A stretch of DNA of 64,000 bases from the IMG/VR virus record IMGVR_UViG_3300037087_000760, positions 1 through 64,000 of that record. One strand, written 5' to 3'. Position 1 is the stretch's first letter, and each line of letters starts with the position of its first letter. Both the position numbers and the translations under genes were made by a program. Positions 6,958 to 14,481 of the stretch are shown one piece after another. The notes under the pieces are model-generated. The model did not search any database, was not told the DNA's origin, and saw nothing but the letters and a program-made list of their open reading frames with translations.

Positions 6958-7232
6958 TTTTCTTTTAATTGTTTTGTTAATTCCTTTCTTCTTTCAATTG
7001 CTTTCTCTTTATCTTCCCATTTTTCAATGAAAGTTTTTTTGAAATAGAATTTGTAATAAATAACATAAAATTTCCCTTCTTTTTCAATAACATATCTCCT
7101 TGTGGTAAATAAAGTCAACTCACTCATTAAGTAATTCCATTTTCCCTCGAAAGCAAAATGATATGTCTTTGTCCCGTATGATATATAGACAGAGAATTTA
7201 CTACCGTTTATATAAAATTTTTTAAAGTTCAT
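6954..7232 (-). CDS. Hypothetical protein
   Basis: Overlaps neighbours in operon-like packing. Confidence 0.55.
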
Positions 7233-9252
7233 TTTCTATTTTTTCATAATGAGAAAAAGTCAAATTGTTTATAGCTCTCCCCTGTGATAATGTTCTAAGT
7301 GTTGTTATAAAACCAAACTTCTCAGCCAAAGGTGATTGAACTTTGAGGATTATAGTCGAATCTGGTAATGTATTAATAGATACTATCGTAGAACGATGTT
7401 TATTAAGTTCACTAATTATATCACTCAAATATTCTTCTGGTGTCGTAATTTCTTCATCCATGATAGGTTCAAGTAAACACGGTTTACCTTTCATATAAGC
7501 CTTCGGAAACGAAATCTTCACACAAGTTTCAAAGGCGTATGGGCTTGAATCCACAACATGAGTAGAACCATCTATGATTGTTACTTTCAAACTTTCGATT
7601 TCGTTACCACCCAATGGACCACTAATCATACATTCTTTAAAAGCCTTTTCGATAGAAGTCATATATTCTCTTGGAATGTTTCCACCTTTAACCTCATTCA
7701 CAAAAATTAAACCCTTTGTATCATCGGATACAGGTTCTATTCTATACTCAATCTCAGCAAACATACCCTTTCCACCAGTTTGTCTTGATAATCTTTCTTT
7801 GTGTGTTACTGGTTGAGTTATTGTTTCTCTATAAGAAACTTTTGGTTGTCCTGTATTACATCCGACATTAAAATCAGTAATCAATCTACTTAAAATCACA
7901 TCCAAATATAATTCGCCCATACCACTAATAATGGTTTGTCCATTTTCATCTATCTTAACAGTAAATGTAGGATCTTCCTCAGTAAGTTTTTGAAGAGCAA
8001 ATCCTAATTTATCACTATCCTTATTTGTTAAGGGTTCAATGGTTATTGAAATAACTGGTTTTGGAACAATCATATTCTCAAAATGGAATGTATCTTTTGT
8101 TTCACAAAGAGTATCACCAGTTCGTAAATCTTTTATTCCAACAATACCACAAATATCACCAGCACCAACAGATTTTACTTCTATTTTCTTATTGGCTTGA
8201 ATGGTAAATAATCTTGAAATTCTTTCTGATTGTCCTGTTCTGGAATTATAAACAACTTGACCAAGTTTAAGCACACCAGAATAAACTCGAATCATAGATA
8301 ATTTTCCAGTATTTTTATCTGTCGAAATTTTAAAAACCAAAGCTGATAATTTTTCATCTTCACTTGGTCTAATTTCAACTTGTTCCGAATCTCTATTGGC
8401 ATAAATAATACCCCTATCAACTGGAGATGGTAAAAAATTCACCACAGCATCAAGTAATGTTTGTACTCCCTTATTTTTCTTAGCAGATCCACACAAAATA
8501 GGAACAATAGAAAAATCTAATGTTAAACTACGAAGATTTTTAATTATTTCTTCATTCGTTATCAATTCAGGTGTTTCCAAATACTTCTCAAAAAAGTCAT
8601 CGTTATGTTCCGAAATAGATTCAATCATTTTAATTCGGAATTTCAATGCCTGATCTAAGTATTCTTCAGGTATTACAGAAACACTATATTCCTGACCTAA
8701 TGTTTCGGAAGCCCATGTAATCAGTTTCATATCTATAAGGTCAATAACACCTTTGAAATTACTTTCACTTCCTACGGGAAGTTGAATCACAACTGGTTTC
8801 GATTTAAGTCTATCTTGAATTTGATGTACTACATTAAAGAAATCAGCTCCAATCCTATCCATCTTGTTTACAAAGGCTATTCTTGGTACTTTATATCTGT
8901 TGGCCTGTCTCCAAACTGTTTCGGATTGAGGTTGTACACCGCCGACTGCACAGAAAACAACAACGGCCCCATCTAATATTCGGAGTGAGCGTTCAACCTC
9001 AATCGTAAAATCAATGTGGCCGGGAGTATCTATAATATTTATCTTATGATCTTTCCAATACGATGTAACAGCAGCTGCCATAATCGTTATACCTCGTTCT
9101 TGTTCCTGAGGCATAAAATCGGTTACTGTATTACCATCGTGAACCTCTCCCATTTTATGATTCTCACCAGTATAATACAATATACGCTCAGTCAATGTGG
9201 TTTTTCCGGCATCGATATGGGCTACTATTCCTATATTTCTGTTAAGATTCAT
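7222..9252 (-). CDS. fusA: Elongation factor G
   Basis: [42 protein letters not shown]; 676 aa. Confidence 0.95.
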
Positions 9253-9399
9253 ATTTAATTTTTATTATATTTTCGAAATTTAATGTCGTTTAAAATGATG
9301 TTTATAAACGACATAATGACCGAAATCAGTCTGTAATGTAGGATATAAACAACAAAAAGTATATGTATAACATATCTTAAATTTTATTTATTTTATTTG

Positions 9400-9474
9400 A
9401 GTCAGAGGAGGGATTCGAACCCACGATTGTACGGTTTTGCAGACCGGTGCTTTTGACCACTCAGCCACCCTGAC
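9400..9474 (-). tRNA. tRNA-Cys(GCA)
   Basis: Full cloverleaf, anticodon loop CT-GCA-AA, T loop TTCGAAT, U73. Confidence 0.9.
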
Positions 9475-9593
9475 GAATTATTCTTCTTTGGATTCCTCTA
9501 ATCTTTTCCTGTCGAATTCTAACCATTCATCCAGTTTTTCATCAGTAAAAGAATTGAGTAATTCTACAAAATCCTCATATAAAGTATCCAAAT

Positions 9594-10214
9594 CTATTCC
9601 TTTTTCCATTTTACATTTAATGACTTATCGAATACTAACAAATATCTATGTTTACGACTTCGAGGTCTCCATTCACCCTCGACATCTTTCACTTTCCCCC
9701 TTGATTGCTTTATATATGTTCCATCTGGTTTTTTAATCCAGAAATCATTTTTGGGTTCTGTTAAACCATAATATTGAAAATTACATGCTTTATATATCGT
9801 ACCTAAATGAAAATCAGCATCAGCATAACTCAATATAACTCTAACTTTCGTATCTTTTCTCAATTGACGAATCGCCCTCGATACAAACCAACTGGTAATA
9901 TTATGTTCTACTTTTTGAATATCTGGATGAACACATAATCTACTCAACTCAAATAAACCCTCTTGATCATTTCTTTCCAATCCTAACATCCCCTTAGAAA
10001 GTTCTGGAACTGGAAAACCAGTGAAAATAATCACACCAACTAATTGTTCATTTTCAAACAGACCGTAATTAAAACCACTTTTAAATCCTCTGGAGATGTC
10101 TTTGAGATAATGAAATTTCAATAATAATTCACCAGCTTGTTCTTTGGTAATTCTACTCACATTGAAATTTTCTTTCATACCCTCATTTATAAACTCCAAA
10201 AATGTTTTTATCAT
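9594..10214 (-). CDS. mom: Mu Mom-like DNA adenine modification protein with CTS-like N-terminus
   Basis: FHYL, GLFENEQLVGVIIF, ELSRL, SWFVSRAIRQL, ILSYAD, HLGTIYKACNF; start MIKTFLEFINE just after late motif at 10220-10229. Confidence 0.8.
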   Translation of the reverse strand: MIKTFLEFINEGMKENFNVSRITKEQAGELLLKFHYLKDISRGFKSGFNYGLFENEQLVGVIIFTGFPVPELSKGMLGLERNDQEGLFELSRLCVHPDIQKVEHNITSWFVSRAIRQLRKDTKVRVILSYADADFHLGTIYKACNFQYYGLTEPKNDFWIKKPDGTYIKQSRGKVKDVEGEWRPRSRKHRYLLVFDKSLNVKWKKE

Positions 10215-10249
10215 GATTGTATATATTAATATACTCAATCATGAATTAG

Positions 10250-10342
10250 AAGCGGGGGTAGGAGTCGAACCCACTATCTAAAGGTTATGAGCCTTTAATG
10301 ATTTATGTTGACGAATCAACAATTCCGTTTCACTCTCCCGCA
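10250..10342 (-). tRNA. tRNA-Met(CAT), initiator-like, with hairpin inserted in D loop
   Basis: AAAGG-CTCATAA-CCTTT arm, T arm intact, 1:72 mismatch; D loop contains TGTTGA-TTCG-TCAACA. Confidence 0.7.
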
Positions 10343-10356
10343 ATGTATTAAAATAG

Positions 10357-10445
10357 TAGCGGATGTAAGATTCGAACTTACGACTTCCTTATGGGAAGTT
10401 TCAGCTTATGAGACTGAGGAGATAGGCCAACTTCTCTAATCCGCG
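10357..10445 (-). tRNA. tRNA-Met(CAT) with long variable arm
   Basis: C1:U72 mismatch, TCAGT-CTCATAA-GCTGA, variable hairpin ACTTCC-CATAA-GGAAGT. Confidence 0.75.
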
Positions 10446-10451
10446 ATGTGT

Positions 10452-10552
10452 GTCCTACTGTTGGTGCGACCAACCTTTCTGGAACTCATTATACCGTAGG
10501 TTAGAGCGACCAACTTTATTAGTTCAATGATATTTCCCTCTGAATTAGTAGG
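10452..10552 (-). ncRNA. Unknown tRNA-sized structured RNA
   Basis: Closed by GTCCTACT/AGTAGGAC; two similar GTTGG-TCGCn-CYAAC hairpins; sits between two tRNAs. Confidence 0.5.
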
Positions 10553-10558
10553 ACTTAG

Positions 10559-10630
<72 letters not shown>

Positions 10631-10635
10631 ATATA

Positions 10636-10884
10636 TTATTTCAATTCATGTCTGCACAATGGACATTCTTTAATTTTTATCAACCAATGAATAGTTCTCA
10701 CTACCGTTTTTTCTGGGTCATCAAAACACACCTTTTCACCATCCCAAATTCCTACGATTGATGTTTTCACAGTTTTACCATTAACTCTTTTTATGTTATG
10801 GTATTGAACTAAATCACCTTTCTTAATATCATCTAATTGTTTACCAATCAGATTTCCGTAATTGTCGTATTTACTTTCTTCCAT
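10636..10884 (-). CDS. Hypothetical protein inside tRNA cluster
   Basis: 82 aa ORF with own TAnnTTTG promoter. Confidence 0.65.
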   Translation of the reverse strand: MEESKYDNYGNLIGKQLDDIKKGDLVQYHNIKRVNGKTVKTSIVGIWDGEKVCFDDPEKTVVRTIHWLIKIKECPLCRHELK

Positions 10885-10888
10885 TTTA

Positions 10889-10920
10889 CAAAGATATAAA
10901 TAAATATTCTAATTAAAAAA
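10889..10920 (-). promoter_or_regulatory. Bacteroidota-type promoter (TATCTTTG with upstream T-run)
   Basis: Matches -7 consensus TAnnTTTG. Confidence 0.7.
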
Positions 10921-10926
10921 TCATTG

Positions 10927-10999
10927 AGATCGGAGAGGGAATCAAACCCCCGTCTCTGAGGTTGCAGCTCAGCACCTATTTACACTCGGCCATCCGACC
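10927..10999 (-). tRNA. tRNA-Cys(GCA)
   Basis: CTGAG-CTGCAAC-CTCAG arm, U73. Confidence 0.8.
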
Positions 11000-11004
11000 A
11001 TTTG

Positions 11005-11077
11005 AGCGATAAGTGGGGGTCAAACCCACGACCTTCAGCTTGGGAAGCTGACACTCTATCAACTGAGCTATTATCGC
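11005..11077 (-). tRNA. tRNA-Gly(CCC)
   Basis: TCAGC-TTCCCAA-GCTGA, U73. Confidence 0.9.
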
Positions 11078-11130
11078 ATCCGTTTGACACATCCTTTGAC
11101 ATCACCCTCTCTCCGTTATATCAAACAGCG

Positions 11131-11202
11131 AGCGAGTAATCAGAATCGAACTGACATCATCGGTATGGTAAGCCGATACACTACACATTGTGCTATACTC
11201 GC
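11131..11202 (-). tRNA. tRNA-Gly(ACC), 31:39 mismatch
   Basis: TCGGC-TTACCAT-ACCGA, Gly-type acceptor, U73. Confidence 0.75.
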
Positions 11203-11277
11203 GAATCAGTACCCGCACTTTCCGCCTTAATTATTCCCTGTTACACTGCGGTTAGGGAGTTGGTTATGATAGACCTG

Positions 11278-11360
11278 AGCGGGAGAAGGGATTCGAACCC
11301 TCACCTGAAGTTTGGAAGACTCCTATGCTAGCTTACGCGACCGTTAAACACCACTCCCGC
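11278..11360 (-). tRNA. tRNA-Gly(TCC) with D-loop insertion
   Basis: GGAGT-CTTCCAA-ACTTC; 19-nt D loop containing GC-GTAA-GC. Confidence 0.8.
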
Positions 11361-11371
11361 GAGTGATTTTG

Positions 11372-11442
11372 AGCAGATAATGAGAATCGAACTCACATCA
11401 AAAGATTGGAAATCTCTTACACTACCATTGTGCTATATCTGC
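11372..11442 (-). tRNA. tRNA-Gly(TCC)
   Basis: AGAGA-TTTCCAA-TCTTT, U73. Confidence 0.9.
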
Positions 11443-11448
11443 GTAAAA

Positions 11449-11553
11449 GGTCAGTATGTCGAATGTATTCGGACTGATTTTCGTTTTGCACATTCCTAAT
11501 CATCTGTCTTAACATCTCAGTTCACCGCCATTGTGCTACCGCGTTTACTGACC
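11449..11553 (-). ncRNA. Unknown tRNA-sized structured RNA
   Basis: Closed by GGTCAGTA/TACTGACC; carries D-arm-like TAGCACAATGG; fills the gap between two tRNAs. Confidence 0.45.
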
Positions 11554-11554
11554 T

Positions 11555-11629
11555 TGGAGCGGGATGCGGGATTTAAACCCGCGACCTGAAGTTTGGTAAA
11601 CTTCCGCTCTATCACTGAGCTAATCCCGC
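11555..11629 (-). tRNA. tRNA-Gly(ACC) with encoded CCA
   Basis: Perfect GAAGT-TTACCAA-ACTTC arm, U73-CCA. Confidence 0.9.
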
Positions 11630-11717
11630 GTGGGAGGCTATCTAAACTCTTTGACCCAATCAGATTTCTCCTGTCATGAGTTAACTTCGCCTTATTAGTT
11701 TTTCGAATGTTTTTTAG

Positions 11718-11789
11718 TAGCCCCGGCGGGAATCGAACCTGCATCCAGAAATTAGAAGTTTCTTGTTCTATCCATTGAACTACGGAGCC
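11718..11789 (-). tRNA. tRNA-Arg(TCT)
   Basis: AGAAA-CTTCTAA-TTTCT, canonical cloverleaf. Confidence 0.9.
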
Positions 11790-11838
11790 ATACTTTATAT
11801 AAACTATTTACCACCATTAAGTTTAATATTAATTATTG

Positions 11839-11916
11839 TAACCCTGAAGGGATTCGAACCCTCATTTTCATCCGTTATGCACAATCGAGTTTAGAAAACT
11901 CAGCCATTACAGGGCT
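11839..11916 (-). tRNA. D-armless tRNA-Arg(TCT)-like RNA with 22-nt variable region
   Basis: Acceptor AGCCCTG/CAGGGTT, TGAGT-TTTCTAA-ACTCG arm and T arm intact; only TAATGGC between acceptor and anticodon arm. Confidence 0.6.
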
Positions 11917-11921
11917 ATTTG

Positions 11922-12003
11922 TACCGATGGAGAGATTCGAACTCTCACTTCCGATGGAAACAAGTTCCTAAAACTTGCGTGTCTACCATTCCACCACACC
12001 GGC
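11922..12003 (-). tRNA. tRNA-Leu(TAG)
   Basis: CAAGT-TTTAGGA-ACTTG, class II variable arm, A73. Confidence 0.9.
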
Positions 12004-12029
12004 TTAAAAAGTTAAATAAGTTGTGATAT

Positions 12030-12124
12030 TGTACACCATACCCAACCCAGAGTCGAACTGGATTAGTTGGGGTCTCGAACCCCGCTTCACACAACCACCT
12101 ACTACCGTTCAGTATTATTCAACC
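12030..12124 (-). ncRNA. tRNA-derived element with two T-arm-like hairpins
   Basis: GGGG-TTCGAGA-CCCC and CCAG-TTCGACT-CTGG plus D-like TACT-GAACGGT-AGTA. Confidence 0.5.
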
Positions 12125-12128
12125 TTAG

Positions 12129-12198
12129 CAGTACAAGCAGGAATCGAACCTACATCCACCCTCTACTGAGGGTACTCTTTCCATTAAGCTACTGTACT
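12129..12198 (-). ncRNA. tRNA-like RNA lacking an anticodon loop (AGTA tetraloop)
   Basis: Acceptor, D and T arms canonical; CCCTC-AGTA-GAGGG in place of anticodon arm; G73. Confidence 0.75.
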
Positions 12199-12262
12199 TA
12201 CACATCAATTTTATTCTAGCTTATTATGATGTGATTTACACTTTTGATGTAAATATCTTTTA

Positions 12263-12330
12263 GTACTCTAAAAGGATTCGAACCTATACTCCTCGCTTAC
12301 GCGAGTGTGCTACCATTACACCATAAAGTC
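12263..12330 (-). ncRNA. tRNA-like RNA lacking an anticodon loop (GTAA GNRA tetraloop)
   Basis: GTGT-AATGGTA-GCAC D arm, CTCGC-GTAA-GCGAG, TTCGAAT T loop. Confidence 0.7.
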
Positions 12331-12430
12331 AACTTTCGTCATTGACACTGACATATCATTTCGGAAAGAACACATATTTTACTCCTTTCTGATTGTCAGA
12401 TCTTACTCGTTTCAAATTCCAGTGTTTTTG

Positions 12431-12503
12431 CAGGCAGTACGGGAGTTGAACCCGCTCCGAACGCCGTGACAGGGCGACATCTTAACCGTTTGACCTACTG
12501 CCT
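12431..12503 (-). tRNA. tRNA-Asp(GTC)
   Basis: CT-GTC-AC loop, G73. Confidence 0.85.
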
Positions 12504-12521
12504 ATGTAGGGGAACATTCTG

Positions 12522-12598
12522 CGGGCCCAGTGGGATTCAAACCCACCTGTTATTCCTGATCGACAGTCAGGTAGACACATCCAGCATCTCCTGAGCCC
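12522..12598 (-). tRNA. tRNA-Asp(GTC), divergent
   Basis: CCTGA-CTGTCGA-TCAGG, 8-nt variable loop, T loop TTTGAAT, G73. Confidence 0.75.
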
Positions 12599-12609
12599 AT
12601 TCATTATTG

Positions 12610-12709
12610 CGGTAGGAGTTGGGATCGAACCAACATATAAAGCATTCATCCTATCAGACTACTTCTGATGTCCATCGGTGGCACCCTATGAACTTTATGC
12701 TATCCTACC
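12610..12709 (-). ncRNA. tRNA-like RNA with intact acceptor/T arm and expanded centre lacking a canonical anticodon arm
   Basis: GGTAGGA/TCCTACC-G, GTTGG-TTCGATC-CCAAC, internal ATCAGA-AGTAG-TCTGAT hairpin. Confidence 0.65.
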
Positions 12710-12729
12710 ATTTATTTTTAGTATCCAAT

Positions 12730-12762
12730 ATGTCAAAGAACATATTATAATGTCAAAGAAAC
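12730..12762 (-). promoter_or_regulatory. Tandem boxA-like antitermination elements
   Basis: Two copies of TTCTTTGACAT on the tRNA-coding strand, 20 nt apart. Confidence 0.5.
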
Positions 12763-12770
12763 ATTATAAT

Positions 12771-12848
12771 TGGCGGTACATTACGGTTTCGAACCGTTGA
12801 TTTTACATGGGTGACAACCATGTTCCTCACCAAGAGGCCTAATGAACC
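12771..12848 (-). tRNA. tRNA-Asp(GTC) with encoded CCA
   Basis: CATGG-TTGTCAC-CCATG, G73-CCA. Confidence 0.8.
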
Positions 12849-12854
12849 ATTTTG

Positions 12855-12985
12855 AGTCGGGAGCAGGAATCGAACCTACAGCTCTGGTTTAGGAGACCGA
12901 AGTAACTGTAACCATCGCCACTCTTTCACAAGAGGGAATATTTAGAACAGTGTTTTTAAGCGTGTTGCCATTACACTATCCCGAC
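12855..12985 (-). ncRNA. 131-nt tRNA body carrying an inserted anticodon-display module (Arg CCT loop)
   Basis: GTCGGGA/TCCCGAC acceptor, D and T arms canonical; insert has CTCTT-GTGA-AAGAG, GTTACTTC then GGT-CTCCTAA-ACC. Confidence 0.7.
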
Positions 12986-12990
12986 ATAAA

Positions 12991-13080
12991 AAGATTTTAG
13001 AGATATTCACCACTGAGTATTGTTTGAAAACAAATTTGCAGTTTGTCGAAGTAACCCAGATAAGTTCACTACTAAATCTT
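12991..13080 (-). ncRNA. Stand-alone anticodon-display module (Cys GCA loop)
   Basis: Closing stem, GTTACTTC, ACAAA-CTGCAAA-TTTGT, AATATC. Confidence 0.65.
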
Positions 13081-13093
13081 CTTTTAAAAATAT

Positions 13094-13167
13094 ACAGAGA
13101 ATGTTTTCAAAAAGTATATTTGGTAAACATTATGAGTGTTTGATGTAACTCTTCGAACCGCTTCTGT
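13094..13167 (-). ncRNA. Stand-alone anticodon-display module (Met CAT loop)
   Basis: ACAGA/TCTGT stem, GTTACATC, AAACA-CTCATAA-TGTTT, AACATTC. Confidence 0.65.
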
Positions 13168-13205
13168 AAATTTCATTCAATATTTTAAAGAACTATACTT
13201 ATTAA

Positions 13206-13243
13206 AAACAAAAAAACCCAACCGTTATTATCCGATTGGGTTC
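13206..13243 (-). terminator. Attenuator terminator upstream of RNA operon
   Basis: AACCCAATCG-GATAATAA-CGGTTGGGTT followed by T-run. Confidence 0.85.
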
Positions 13244-13265
13244 ATTTGTTTATCTTTATATTTTC

Positions 13266-13340
13266 TTAATGCAAAACAAACCCAATCAGAAATCTATCAT
13301 CTCTGCCACAATCCATTCCGATTCTTACTATATTTTCCAT
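13266..13340 (-). CDS. Putative 24-aa attenuator leader peptide MENIVRIGMDCGRDDRFLIGFVLH
   Basis: ORF 3' part TCTGATTGGGTTT is complementary to the 5' arm of the terminator; not in ORF track. Confidence 0.7.
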   Translation of the reverse strand: MENIVRIGMDCGRDDRFLIGFVLH

Positions 13341-13373
13341 TTGTTTCTGCGTTAATTGGGATTTAATTTTGTT

Positions 13374-13434
13374 TATATATTATACTTTAAAAGTCGTATT
13401 TTTCTATTTTTAGTAATTTTTTTCGAAAAAGTTT
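13374..13434 (-). promoter_or_regulatory. Promoters of the RNA operon: AAACTTTT-N14-TAAAAA (13407-13434) and late AATATATA (13374-13381)
   Basis: Both recurrent motifs present upstream of the leader. Confidence 0.55.
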
Positions 13435-13443
13435 AATTTTTCT

Positions 13444-13647
13444 TTAAATAGTTTTCTTCTTTTTAGCCGGTTTGAAATCTTCTTTCATTAATTCATCTAT
13501 GGCTTCTTGTTTCTTCATGGGTTCACTTACAAGATATTTGCCAGCTATAATACCATACTTTCCTGTGGGTTTACCACTATTAAGTAACGGTACTACTTTA
13601 AACCCTAAATGTTGAAACTCAACACGACCAATTTTACCTCTTGCCAT
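13444..13647 (-). CDS. Small basic hypothetical protein
   Basis: Likely start MARGKIGRVEF. Confidence 0.65.
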   Translation of the reverse strand: MARGKIGRVEFQHLGFKVVPLLNSGKPTGKYGIIAGKYLVSEPMKKQEAIDELMKEDFKPAKKKKTI

Positions 13648-13740
13648 TTTACTCCTTTTTTTAAAAAGTTTTTGAGAGTGGGGATACATTCATACCCCCA
13701 TCCTCAAATCCGACCTTTTCACTTTAACACAATCTGAAAA

Positions 13741-13778
13741 CTTTGACAAAGATATGTCAAATATTTGGAAGAAAAAAA
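13741..13778 (-). promoter_or_regulatory. Bacteroidota-type promoter straddled by inverted repeat TTTGACA-N6-TGTCAAA
   Basis: TATCTTTG at 13747-13754 inside the palindrome. Confidence 0.6.
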
Positions 13779-14123
13779 TTATTTCAATATTTTCTTTAAT
13801 TTTCTTTTTCTATATATGTTAATCAATTCTTCTTCTGAACACCAACCAACCTTTTCAAATAATCTATAATACCTATTACCATTGATGATTGTATTTAGAA
13901 GTGTTCCCGGCTTTGTTAAAATTCCAATTATGAGTTTATCTGGATTTTTGATATGTTCAACCATTATTGCATCGTAAGCTCTTCTCAGAATGACATTTTG
14001 TTCTGCCATAACATCCACAATAGCTTTTTTCTTACCGACAGGTGGTATTATTGTAATTTCTTCAGTTGTTTCAAATTTAATGAACTTAGCTGTAAATATC
14101 TCTATTTTAAGATTCTCATTCAT
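13779..14123 (-). CDS. Hypothetical protein
   Basis: Operon-like overlap. Confidence 0.6.
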   Translation of the reverse strand: MNENLKIEIFTAKFIKFETTEEITIIPPVGKKKAIVDVMAEQNVILRRAYDAIMVEHIKNPDKLIIGILTKPGTLLNTIINGNRYYRLFEKVGWCSEEELINIYRKRKLKKILK

Positions 14124-14481
14124 CTTCTTCGAAAACTACTTTTTTAAATATGATTTTTTTATCTAACTCGATTTTATTTTCTTTTATTAAAATTTTTATT
14201 TTCGTATGTACAAAACAATTCAAATGTGAAATTAAAACTGGATCAATTCCTTTTTCTTTTAAAGAAGTCAATGTGGATGTTTGTTCTGTTTTTATTAAAT
14301 GTAATATATATTCTTTAATATAAGAGGGTTGTCCCTTATTCAAATATGAACACATTTCATTAAATCTTCCAATGAACTTTGAAAAATATTTTTTTTGATT
14401 CTTTGGAAGAAGATTAATTCTTTCTGCTATTATGTTTATAATAGGAAATTTATTTGGATCTCCGAAAGTGTCTACATTCAT
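14116..14481 (-). CDS. Hypothetical protein
   Basis: Operon-like overlap. Confidence 0.6.
   Translation of the reverse strand: MNVDTFGDPNKFPIINIIAERINLLPKNQKKYFSKFIGRFNEMCSYLNKGQPSYIKEYILHLIKTEQTSTLTSLKEKGIDPVLISHLNCFVHTKIKILIKENKIELDKKIIFKKVVFEEDE

Follow-up and report, generated by a model that had tools for sequence, protein, structure and literature searches.

The reason for tRNA genes in phages is a matter of decades-old debate, with codon compensation, the replacement of degraded host tRNAs and the evasion of anticodon nucleases all put forward as answers. The locus described here raises a further question, namely what decides when such genes are transcribed. On the minus strand of the window (the whole 64,000-nt stretch of viral DNA that was analysed), a short open reading frame (ORF) and an intrinsic terminator stand before a tRNA array put at 14–16 genes, and all elements of the putative switch (ORF, terminator and pairing segments) lie on that strand upstream of the array. 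From the comparisons below, we consider it likely that the locus controls transcription into the phage tRNA array as a ribosome-mediated (leader-peptide) attenuator. Its features, and the leaders found at other arrays, are collected in Table 1.

The window has a G+C content of ~30%, and its EF-G is 77% identical to the EF-G of LR756501, a 735-kb genome described by Al-Shayeb et al. (PMC7162821). Genomes of at least 634 kb were placed in a 'Mahaphage' clade with predicted Bacteroidetes hosts (PMC7162821), and the window comes from a huge Mahaphage-like phage. By DNA similarity, positions 12700-14200 had no match among 50,697 phage records, and relatives were found through the EF-G protein instead. 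When IMG/VR was scanned with the 81-aa neighbour protein, only the window's own contig (3300037087_000760, 211 kb) matched.

Table 1. Features of the putative attenuator in the window, and leaders of the same module before other tRNA arrays
Feature	Position	Strand	Basis or remark
Upstream motif AATAGAAAAA-N3-GAC	13393..13408	minus	(near-)invariant in 7 homologous leaders; precedes most other leaders
Promoter-like TAATATATA	13374..13382	minus	~34 nt 5' of leader ATG; invariant in the window's family
Segment 0 (AAAUCCCAAU), 5' UTR	13355..13364	minus	MFE of the full-length RNA has it paired with segment 1
Leader ORF, 24 codons + TAA (MENIVRIGMDCGRDDRFLIGFVLH)	13266..13340	minus	ORF calling
Regulatory codon block, codons 6-16	13293..13325	minus	10/11 codons cognate to the array
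Small hairpin CAGAGAU-GAUAG-AUUUCUG within leader ORF	13287..13305	minus	predicted fold; invariant sequence, hence no covariation
Segment 1, antiterminator 5' strand (UCUGAUUGGGUUUGUUU)	13274..13290	minus	leader codons 17-23; invariant in homologues
Segment 2, common to both structures	13231..13251	minus	partner of segment 1 (antiterminator) or segment 3 (terminator)
Intrinsic terminator hairpin, 11 bp, 8-nt loop	13214..13243	minus	-21.3 kcal/mol; compensatory changes at stem top among homologues
Terminator U-tract UUUUGUUUUU	13204..13213	minus	follows the hairpin
tRNA array downstream of attenuator	9399..12985	minus	14 ARAGORN tRNAs and one more Rfam tRNA-like gene; first in the array, a possible tRNA with an intron
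Leu leader, 22 codons	L001:1951-2019		seven Leu codons, all six Leu codon types; array of five tRNA-Leu
MIQEQMQQ leader	L001:22894-22974		array Glu, Met, Gln
Leaders with runs of Q			Gln arrays
NIQNMIINQI leader	including L029, second site in the window's phage		array Ile, Asn, Ile(tat), Met, Gln
QPQPQHQHQ leader	L071:10994-11077		array Pro, Pro, Gln, His
SKHSKH..SSKWF leader	L052:10854-10943; L251 10492..10397		array Trp, His, Phe, Ser, Lys
Leader with A, E, L, V, W, D, M	L043		array Ala, Glu, Leu, Val, Trp, Asp, Met
Leader with Y, L, D, M and CGA codons	L007		array Tyr, Leu, Met, Asp, Arg(tcg), Arg(gcg)
Leader with N, L, T, M, V, C, I, R	L147:3784-3891		array Arg, Asn, Cys, Val, Ile, Leu, Thr, Met

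The first argument for a sensor is the codon content of the leader. The original prediction, made from the window alone, had named Arg(TCT), Asp, Gly, Met, Cys and Leu as the downstream tRNAs; ARAGORN calls every one of them on the same strand, as Asp(gtc) (three genes), Leu(tag), Arg(tct), Gly (acc, tcc, acc and ccc), Cys(gca) (two) and Met(cat) (two). It had also read the core of a 24-codon ORF as a series of these amino acids (Arg x3, Asp x3, Gly, Met and Cys), and codons 6–16 of the leader match exactly: AGA ATC GGA ATG GAT TGT GGC AGA GAT GAT AGA, which by residue is Arg AGA three times, Asp GAT three times, Gly GGA and GGC, Met and Cys. The Gly codons that it listed (GGA, GGC and GGG) are likewise present, the first two in this block and GGG as codon 20. 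Array amino acids account for 13 of the 23 leader codons, against an expected 27% (P=0.0026), and all of the array anticodons (8/8) have a cognate codon in the leader, a coverage with a probability of 0.00025 for random peptides. Included in this coverage are the rare codons GGC, GGG and CTG; GGC and GGG make up 2% and 9%, respectively, of the phage's Gly codons. When the 258 ATG-initiated ORFs of 18–32 codons in the window are compared, the leader ranks first and is the sole ORF to cover all eight anticodons. The small hairpin within the ORF is predicted and invariant, and may be a pause hairpin.

The second argument is the pairing between the leader and the terminator. The prediction of a 13-nt duplex between the 3' end of the ORF and the 5' arm of the terminator was borne out and enlarged: TCTGATTGGGTTT (13290..13278) pairs with GAACCCAATCGGA of the 5' arm over 13 positions, two of which are G.U, and in the nascent RNA the helix of segments 1 and 2 extends to ~17 bp with an energy of -19.8 kcal/mol, compared with -21.3 kcal/mol for the terminator. 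As modelled, this helix is an antiterminator mutually exclusive with the terminator. The motif ATTGGGTTT/AAACCCAAT has four copies within 150 nt here, complementary to one another, and none elsewhere in the window. Because the terminator exceeds the antiterminator in stability by 1.5 kcal/mol, the full leader always folds into the terminator in the equilibrium MFE, even with the ribosome footprint masked at every codon. Equilibrium folding with a ribosome mask is thus uninformative on a kinetic switch and was set aside as a test; the model depends on co-transcriptional kinetics. Further upstream, segment 0 is a possible anti-antiterminator; its pairing with segment 1 beats 97% of shuffles in the window (P about 0.03) but is only partly conserved in homologues. 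In most families, an upstream anti-antiterminator did no better than shuffles.

Both elements are conserved. The original prediction had named a leader or antiterminator that was not conserved as evidence against it; leader, antiterminator and terminator are all kept in six homologues (L142, L184, L187, L200, L205 and L210), each of which precedes a Met/Asp/Leu/Arg(tct)/Gly array. The alignment of the window leader with these six (alignment A1, seven leaders) has an invariant ORF core, antiterminator and terminator stem, and a variable spacer and loop. The ATG, the TAA and the reading frame are kept in all six homologues, and the three indels are each of 3 nt. TGTGGCAGAGATGAT of the regulatory block is invariant as well, and in the variable N-terminal half of the leader the substitutions swap the array's own amino acids (G, C, D and M). 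The leaders of the Gln family have indels of 3, 3, 6 and 12 nt, while those of the spacer and UTR are of any length.

Such strict conservation could also reflect an element that acts as RNA without being translated, whether riboswitch-like, T-box-like or a binding site for a protein, with triplets that pair with anticodons or are incidental. The stretch coding for CGRDD and the antiterminator are invariant even at third positions across the seven homologues, and no Shine-Dalgarno (SD) site precedes the leader, both as an untranslated element would have it. The missing SD is uninformative on translation, however, because the phage does not use SD sites: an SD core is found for 1 of the 59 long ORFs of the window. 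The preserved start, stop and frame, with frame-preserving indels, argue for a translated leader, as does the frame of the codon match, in which the ORF frame outmatches both other frames in 16 of 16 instances; the cognate triplets are also contiguous, in frame and at a ribosome-footprint distance from the antiterminator. Nor does the element match a known Rfam leader or T-box family. The T-box model (RF00230) had no hit at gathering score or E<=10, none of the Rfam leader families matched at gathering score (the best was Phe_leader with 15.8 bits against a threshold of 55, E=8), and in Rfam as a whole the window matched only tRNAs at gathering score, with nothing beyond noise at E<=10. Taken together, an untranslated element seems to us very unlikely, and we return to the translated leader.

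The same module stands before other tRNA arrays in the window's phage, in LR756501 and in dozens of IMG/VR and metagenome contigs. Our survey covered IMG/VR, metagenomes and further regions of LR756501, together with the output of a generic attenuator finder, and yielded more than 30 distinct instances. An example is the Leu leader of LR756501, where a terminator with the same stem (ACCCAATC/GATTGGGT) stands upstream of five tRNA-Leu genes and the leader ends in CTG/TTG ATT GGG TGA, so that the antiterminator overlaps the stop codon. Several other LR756501 arrays have no leader. Terminators with the window's stem are common in unrelated phages and bacteria; the terminator motif was therefore rejected as a marker of the family, and membership requires the leader, the antiterminator and the tRNAs together. 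None of 120 bacterial genome loci with the same DNA pattern had a downstream tRNA.

The window's phage itself carries a second attenuator outside the window, at about 7140-7355 of L029, for Ile/Asn/Met/Gln. Its leader has a 1-nt insertion near the 3' end that abolishes the TGA stop present in six homologues, and its 5' UTR carries an inserted GC-rich hairpin of about 95 nt. These irregularities could be due to sequencing error, to decay or to a variant regulatory design.

Whether leader codons track the downstream tRNAs in related phages had been proposed as a check, and they do so strongly. When nine non-redundant leader families were scored against every array, the cognate combination reached 31.5, compared with 7.1 +/- 5.1 for permuted ones, and the observed score was attained in 2 of 362,880 permutations, one of which is the cognate pairing itself. 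Family-wide, the leaders cover 14.33 of 15 anticodons, against 8.14 +/- 1.05 after shuffling, and none of 200,000 shuffles reached this value. Under strict wobble rules the codons match in 122 of 146 cases, a modest excess over the 111.7 expected at the amino-acid level; the match from codon to anticodon was accordingly set aside as main evidence, and it is the reverse direction, from anticodon to codon, that is informative.

These numbers also bear on another explanation of the locus, in which the hairpin is the ordinary terminator of the upstream gene (13689..13444), and chance accounts for the small ORF and for its complementarity to that terminator. The wide occurrence of same-stem terminators in unrelated phages and bacteria and the frequency of short ORFs in AT-rich DNA lend this some plausibility. 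A conserved promoter-like region, however, lies between the upstream gene and the leader, and the module travels with tRNA arrays whichever gene lies upstream. The antiterminator provides a further contrast. In our first IMG/VR scan, whose loci were selected by terminator stem only and hence form an unbiased control set, an upstream complement of the 5' arm was found for 10 of 13 tRNA-linked terminators and for 2 of 103 others (Fisher 2e-10), with median duplex energies of -14.0 and -4.5 kcal/mol, respectively. The antiterminator is specific to tRNA-linked terminators. Moreover, four terminator stems occur (ACCCAATC, ACCCCGAT, ACCCTGTTCA and ACCCGACCT), and for each of them the leader ORF has a matching segment at its 3' end; cognate stem/antiterminator duplexes have energies of -14.4 to -18.6 kcal/mol compared with -6 to -10.4 for non-cognate ones. 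Between the homologous leaders of L052 and L251, a compensating swap from A-U to U-A is visible in the 3' arm too. Coincidence is excluded by the permutation, duplex, coverage, covariation, ORF-rank and positional statistics, and the comparative data leave it effectively refuted.

The positional statistics also speak to how an attenuator of this kind would work. In 15 non-redundant leaders aligned at the start of the antiterminator, cognate codons occupy 71% of positions -11 to -3 before the antiterminator and 28% of positions elsewhere (p=4e-15); their frequency is 0.87-0.93 at -5/-4 and drops to 0.2 at -2. When its A site lies 4-5 codons upstream, a ribosome extends about 12 nt downstream, so that the leading edge of a stalled ribosome would abut the antiterminator and leave it uncovered. 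This placement is the layout expected if stalling frees the antiterminator. The stop codon lies 11 nt past segment 1 in the window, and in most families it falls inside the antiterminator or within about 11 nt of it, where a terminating ribosome would cover the antiterminator. Some families have the stop 16-22 nt beyond, and there a terminating ribosome would mask the antiterminator only marginally. The original prediction had likened this geometry to that of the his and trp attenuators. The likeness to attenuation holds, but the full four-segment design of trp is not found, and a three-segment version stands in its place.

In the mechanism that we propose, transcription would start near 13370-13410 and the 24-codon leader would be translated as it is made. 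With fast decoding of the Arg(AGA), Gly, Met, Asp and Cys codons, the ribosome would reach the UAA and cover GGGUUUG of segment 1; segment 2 would then pair with segment 3, the terminator would form and RNA polymerase would stop at 13204-13213. With slow decoding of any cognate codon, the ribosome would stall at codons 6–16 and segment 1 would be free to pair with the newly transcribed segment 2, in which case no terminator would form and the tRNA genes would be transcribed. The outcome would be a demand-driven negative feedback on the supply of the tRNAs that the array encodes, and the same module, its leader rewritten for each array, would serve throughout a clade of huge phages whose predicted hosts are Bacteroidetes. 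We infer from sequence that the leader is translated, that stalling decides the fold, that the two structures compete kinetically and that regulation runs in this direction. Given the three-segment design, read-through is predicted without any ribosome; an upstream partner such as segment 0 would prevent it, but most families lack such a pairing.

What signal would such a switch read? The original prediction had the phage sense the depletion or cleavage of several host tRNAs at once and then express replacements and decoys; the trigger may instead be poor charging or the codon demand of the phage. One could speculate that these are 'codon-barcode' attenuators, in which a mini-gene samples decoding capacity for each array and turns the array on when that capacity drops. 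In its strongest form the device would be a counter-defence sensor, where tRNA-cleaving immunity or host shutoff causes stalling and thereby induces replacement tRNAs and possible decoy tRNA-like genes. We offer this as a tentative possibility. Alternatively, the same mechanism might respond to aminoacylation or amino-acid supply and so tie tRNA synthesis to host nutrition. Ribosome stalling cannot distinguish a missing tRNA from an uncharged one, and all of the structural evidence fits a charging signal equally well. More tRNA would not relieve amino-acid starvation, however, which would make the feedback futile, and the match at the level of anticodons, including rare GGC and GGG and all six Leu codons, points to the tRNA species. 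A charging signal appears unlikely to us.

Upstream of the leader, the sequence suggests how its transcript may start. Within the window, TAATATATA occurs 15 times against 3.4 expected (4.5-fold), mostly 5-35 nt 5' of gene starts, and is probably a phage-specific promoter element. Its sites include 16794, 19507, 25461, 33780, 41177, 43170 and 47335, and an A-run often precedes the element. AATAGAAAAA-N3-GAC is a probable part of the promoter region of the leader transcript. A pairing of this motif (GAAAAA..GAC) with segment 1, suggested by RNAalifold, was rejected as probably fortuitous, because the motif is kept where the flank of segment 1 is not U-rich and may precede the transcription start. 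Bacteroidetes-type TAnnTTTG motifs are found further upstream in many relatives.

The array and its surroundings have several unusual features of their own. Between the terminator and the first predicted gene, at 12990-13200 on the minus strand, about 215 nt are without a tRNA; relatives have a tRNA-Met 23-42 nt past the terminator, and the region contains spacer elements conserved in relatives (TAGTAGTGAAC..GGGTTACTTCGAC). The first gene after the attenuator (12854-12985, minus) is, in ARAGORN's intron mode, a predicted tRNA-Val(aac) whose anticodon loop is interrupted by a 58-nt insert. Its 5' half is kept in L200, L142 and L210, its anticodon stem is weak, and so short an intron is unusual for bacteria and phages. 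Two tRNA-like genes of the array (12129-12198 and 12263-12330, minus; Rfam tRNA scores of 43.8 and 39.7 bits) have a 4-nt loop in place of the 7-nt anticodon loop and hence no anticodon, and ARAGORN '???' calls with 'anticodons' of 2 or 4 nt recur in the relatives L161, L202, L121 and L251. Perhaps such anticodon-less genes could act as decoys or have another non-decoding role, and the two in the window may have given rise to the decoys of the original prediction. In L251, a part of LR756501, ARAGORN also calls a tRNA with a 4-base anticodon (ttac) at 7244-7334, which could be a frameshift-suppressor-like tRNA or a mis-call.

The motif GTTCTTTGAMAT, with a TTGACA-like core, lies at 13182-13193, 12730-12741 and 12750-12761 (minus), and is found between tRNA genes as well as after many attenuator terminators (L001, L007, L052, L069 and L184). 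Its role could be that of a processing signal or of an internal promoter, and in the latter case some of the array would escape the attenuator. Directly after the array, on the same minus strand, are genes for EF-G (7222-9252, with all five Pfam EF-G domains) and a Mom-like protein (9594-10238), and in LR756501 an ORF that resembles ribosomal protein L7/L12 in its translated sequence (L001, about 9009-9149) precedes another tRNA array. The tRNA arrays and the EF-G, Mom-like and L7/L12-like genes together make up a translation module.

How does the proposed attenuator compare with known systems? With trpL, hisL, leuL, thrL, ilvL and pheL (the Trp_/His_/Leu_/Thr_/Phe_leader families), it shares a short codon-rich ORF, an intrinsic terminator, an antiterminator that uses the terminator's 5' arm and the position of the ribosome as the switch. 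Multivalent leaders are known among the enterobacteria, as thrL has Thr and Ile codons and ilvL has those for Ile, Leu and Val. The phage targets, in contrast, are tRNA genes rather than biosynthetic enzymes, the molecule sensed and the product being of the same class, and a phage leader encodes codons for up to 8 tRNA species. The phage design also differs from enterobacterial attenuators in having three segments, with the antiterminator 5' strand in the 3' end of the ORF and the stop codon in or near it, and in being phage-borne in a Bacteroidetes-type context without SD sites; there is no similarity of sequence or covariance model. A parallel in function is E. coli pheST, where attenuation through the pheM leader controls phenylalanyl-tRNA synthetase by the supply of charged tRNA. 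There, too, leader-peptide attenuation governs a component of the decoding machinery, but that component is a protein, the synthetase of a single amino acid, and is encoded in a cellular genome, with neither tRNA genes nor a multi-amino-acid leader. T-boxes are similar in that antitermination depends on the status of a tRNA and a leader triplet defines the tRNA sensed; they differ in binding uncharged tRNA directly via one specifier codon and a conserved T-box sequence, with no ORF or ribosome, whereas the phage leader is an ORF with many cognate codons. The best explanation, in our reading, would be that classical ribosome-mediated attenuation has been redeployed to control tRNA genes.

Among phages, the array resembles known tRNA clusters in that other translation genes accompany it. 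Many tRNAs have been described in huge phages (PMC7162821), and the roles proposed for phage tRNAs include codon compensation, the replacement of degraded host tRNAs and the evasion of tRNA-targeting defences (PMC11025619, PMC10264068). A sensor or attenuator that controls the transcription of phage tRNAs is not described in these three papers; the terms 'attenuat', 'leader' and 'terminator' are absent from PMC11025619 and PMC10264068, and 'attenuat' and 'leader' from PMC7162821. The original prediction knew of no described case for a phage tRNA operon, and we likewise found none in full-text searches for leader peptides or attenuation together with phage tRNAs, tRNA arrays or operons, or huge and jumbo phages. 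As far as could be found, no earlier case of leader-peptide attenuation involves tRNA genes or a phage translation module, and this would be the first of both kinds.

If the proposal is true, the sensor would be unusually multivalent, with up to eight tRNA species read by one peptide of 20-35 codons, and its combination of a rewritable leader with a fixed RNA switch would offer a part that synthetic sensors of decoding capacity could use as it stands. For the phages themselves, it would mean that tRNAs are deployed on demand, each array being turned on when its own codons are decoded slowly. The leader would then state which codons the phage treats as limiting, and the long-debated question of why phages carry tRNAs would become directly testable.
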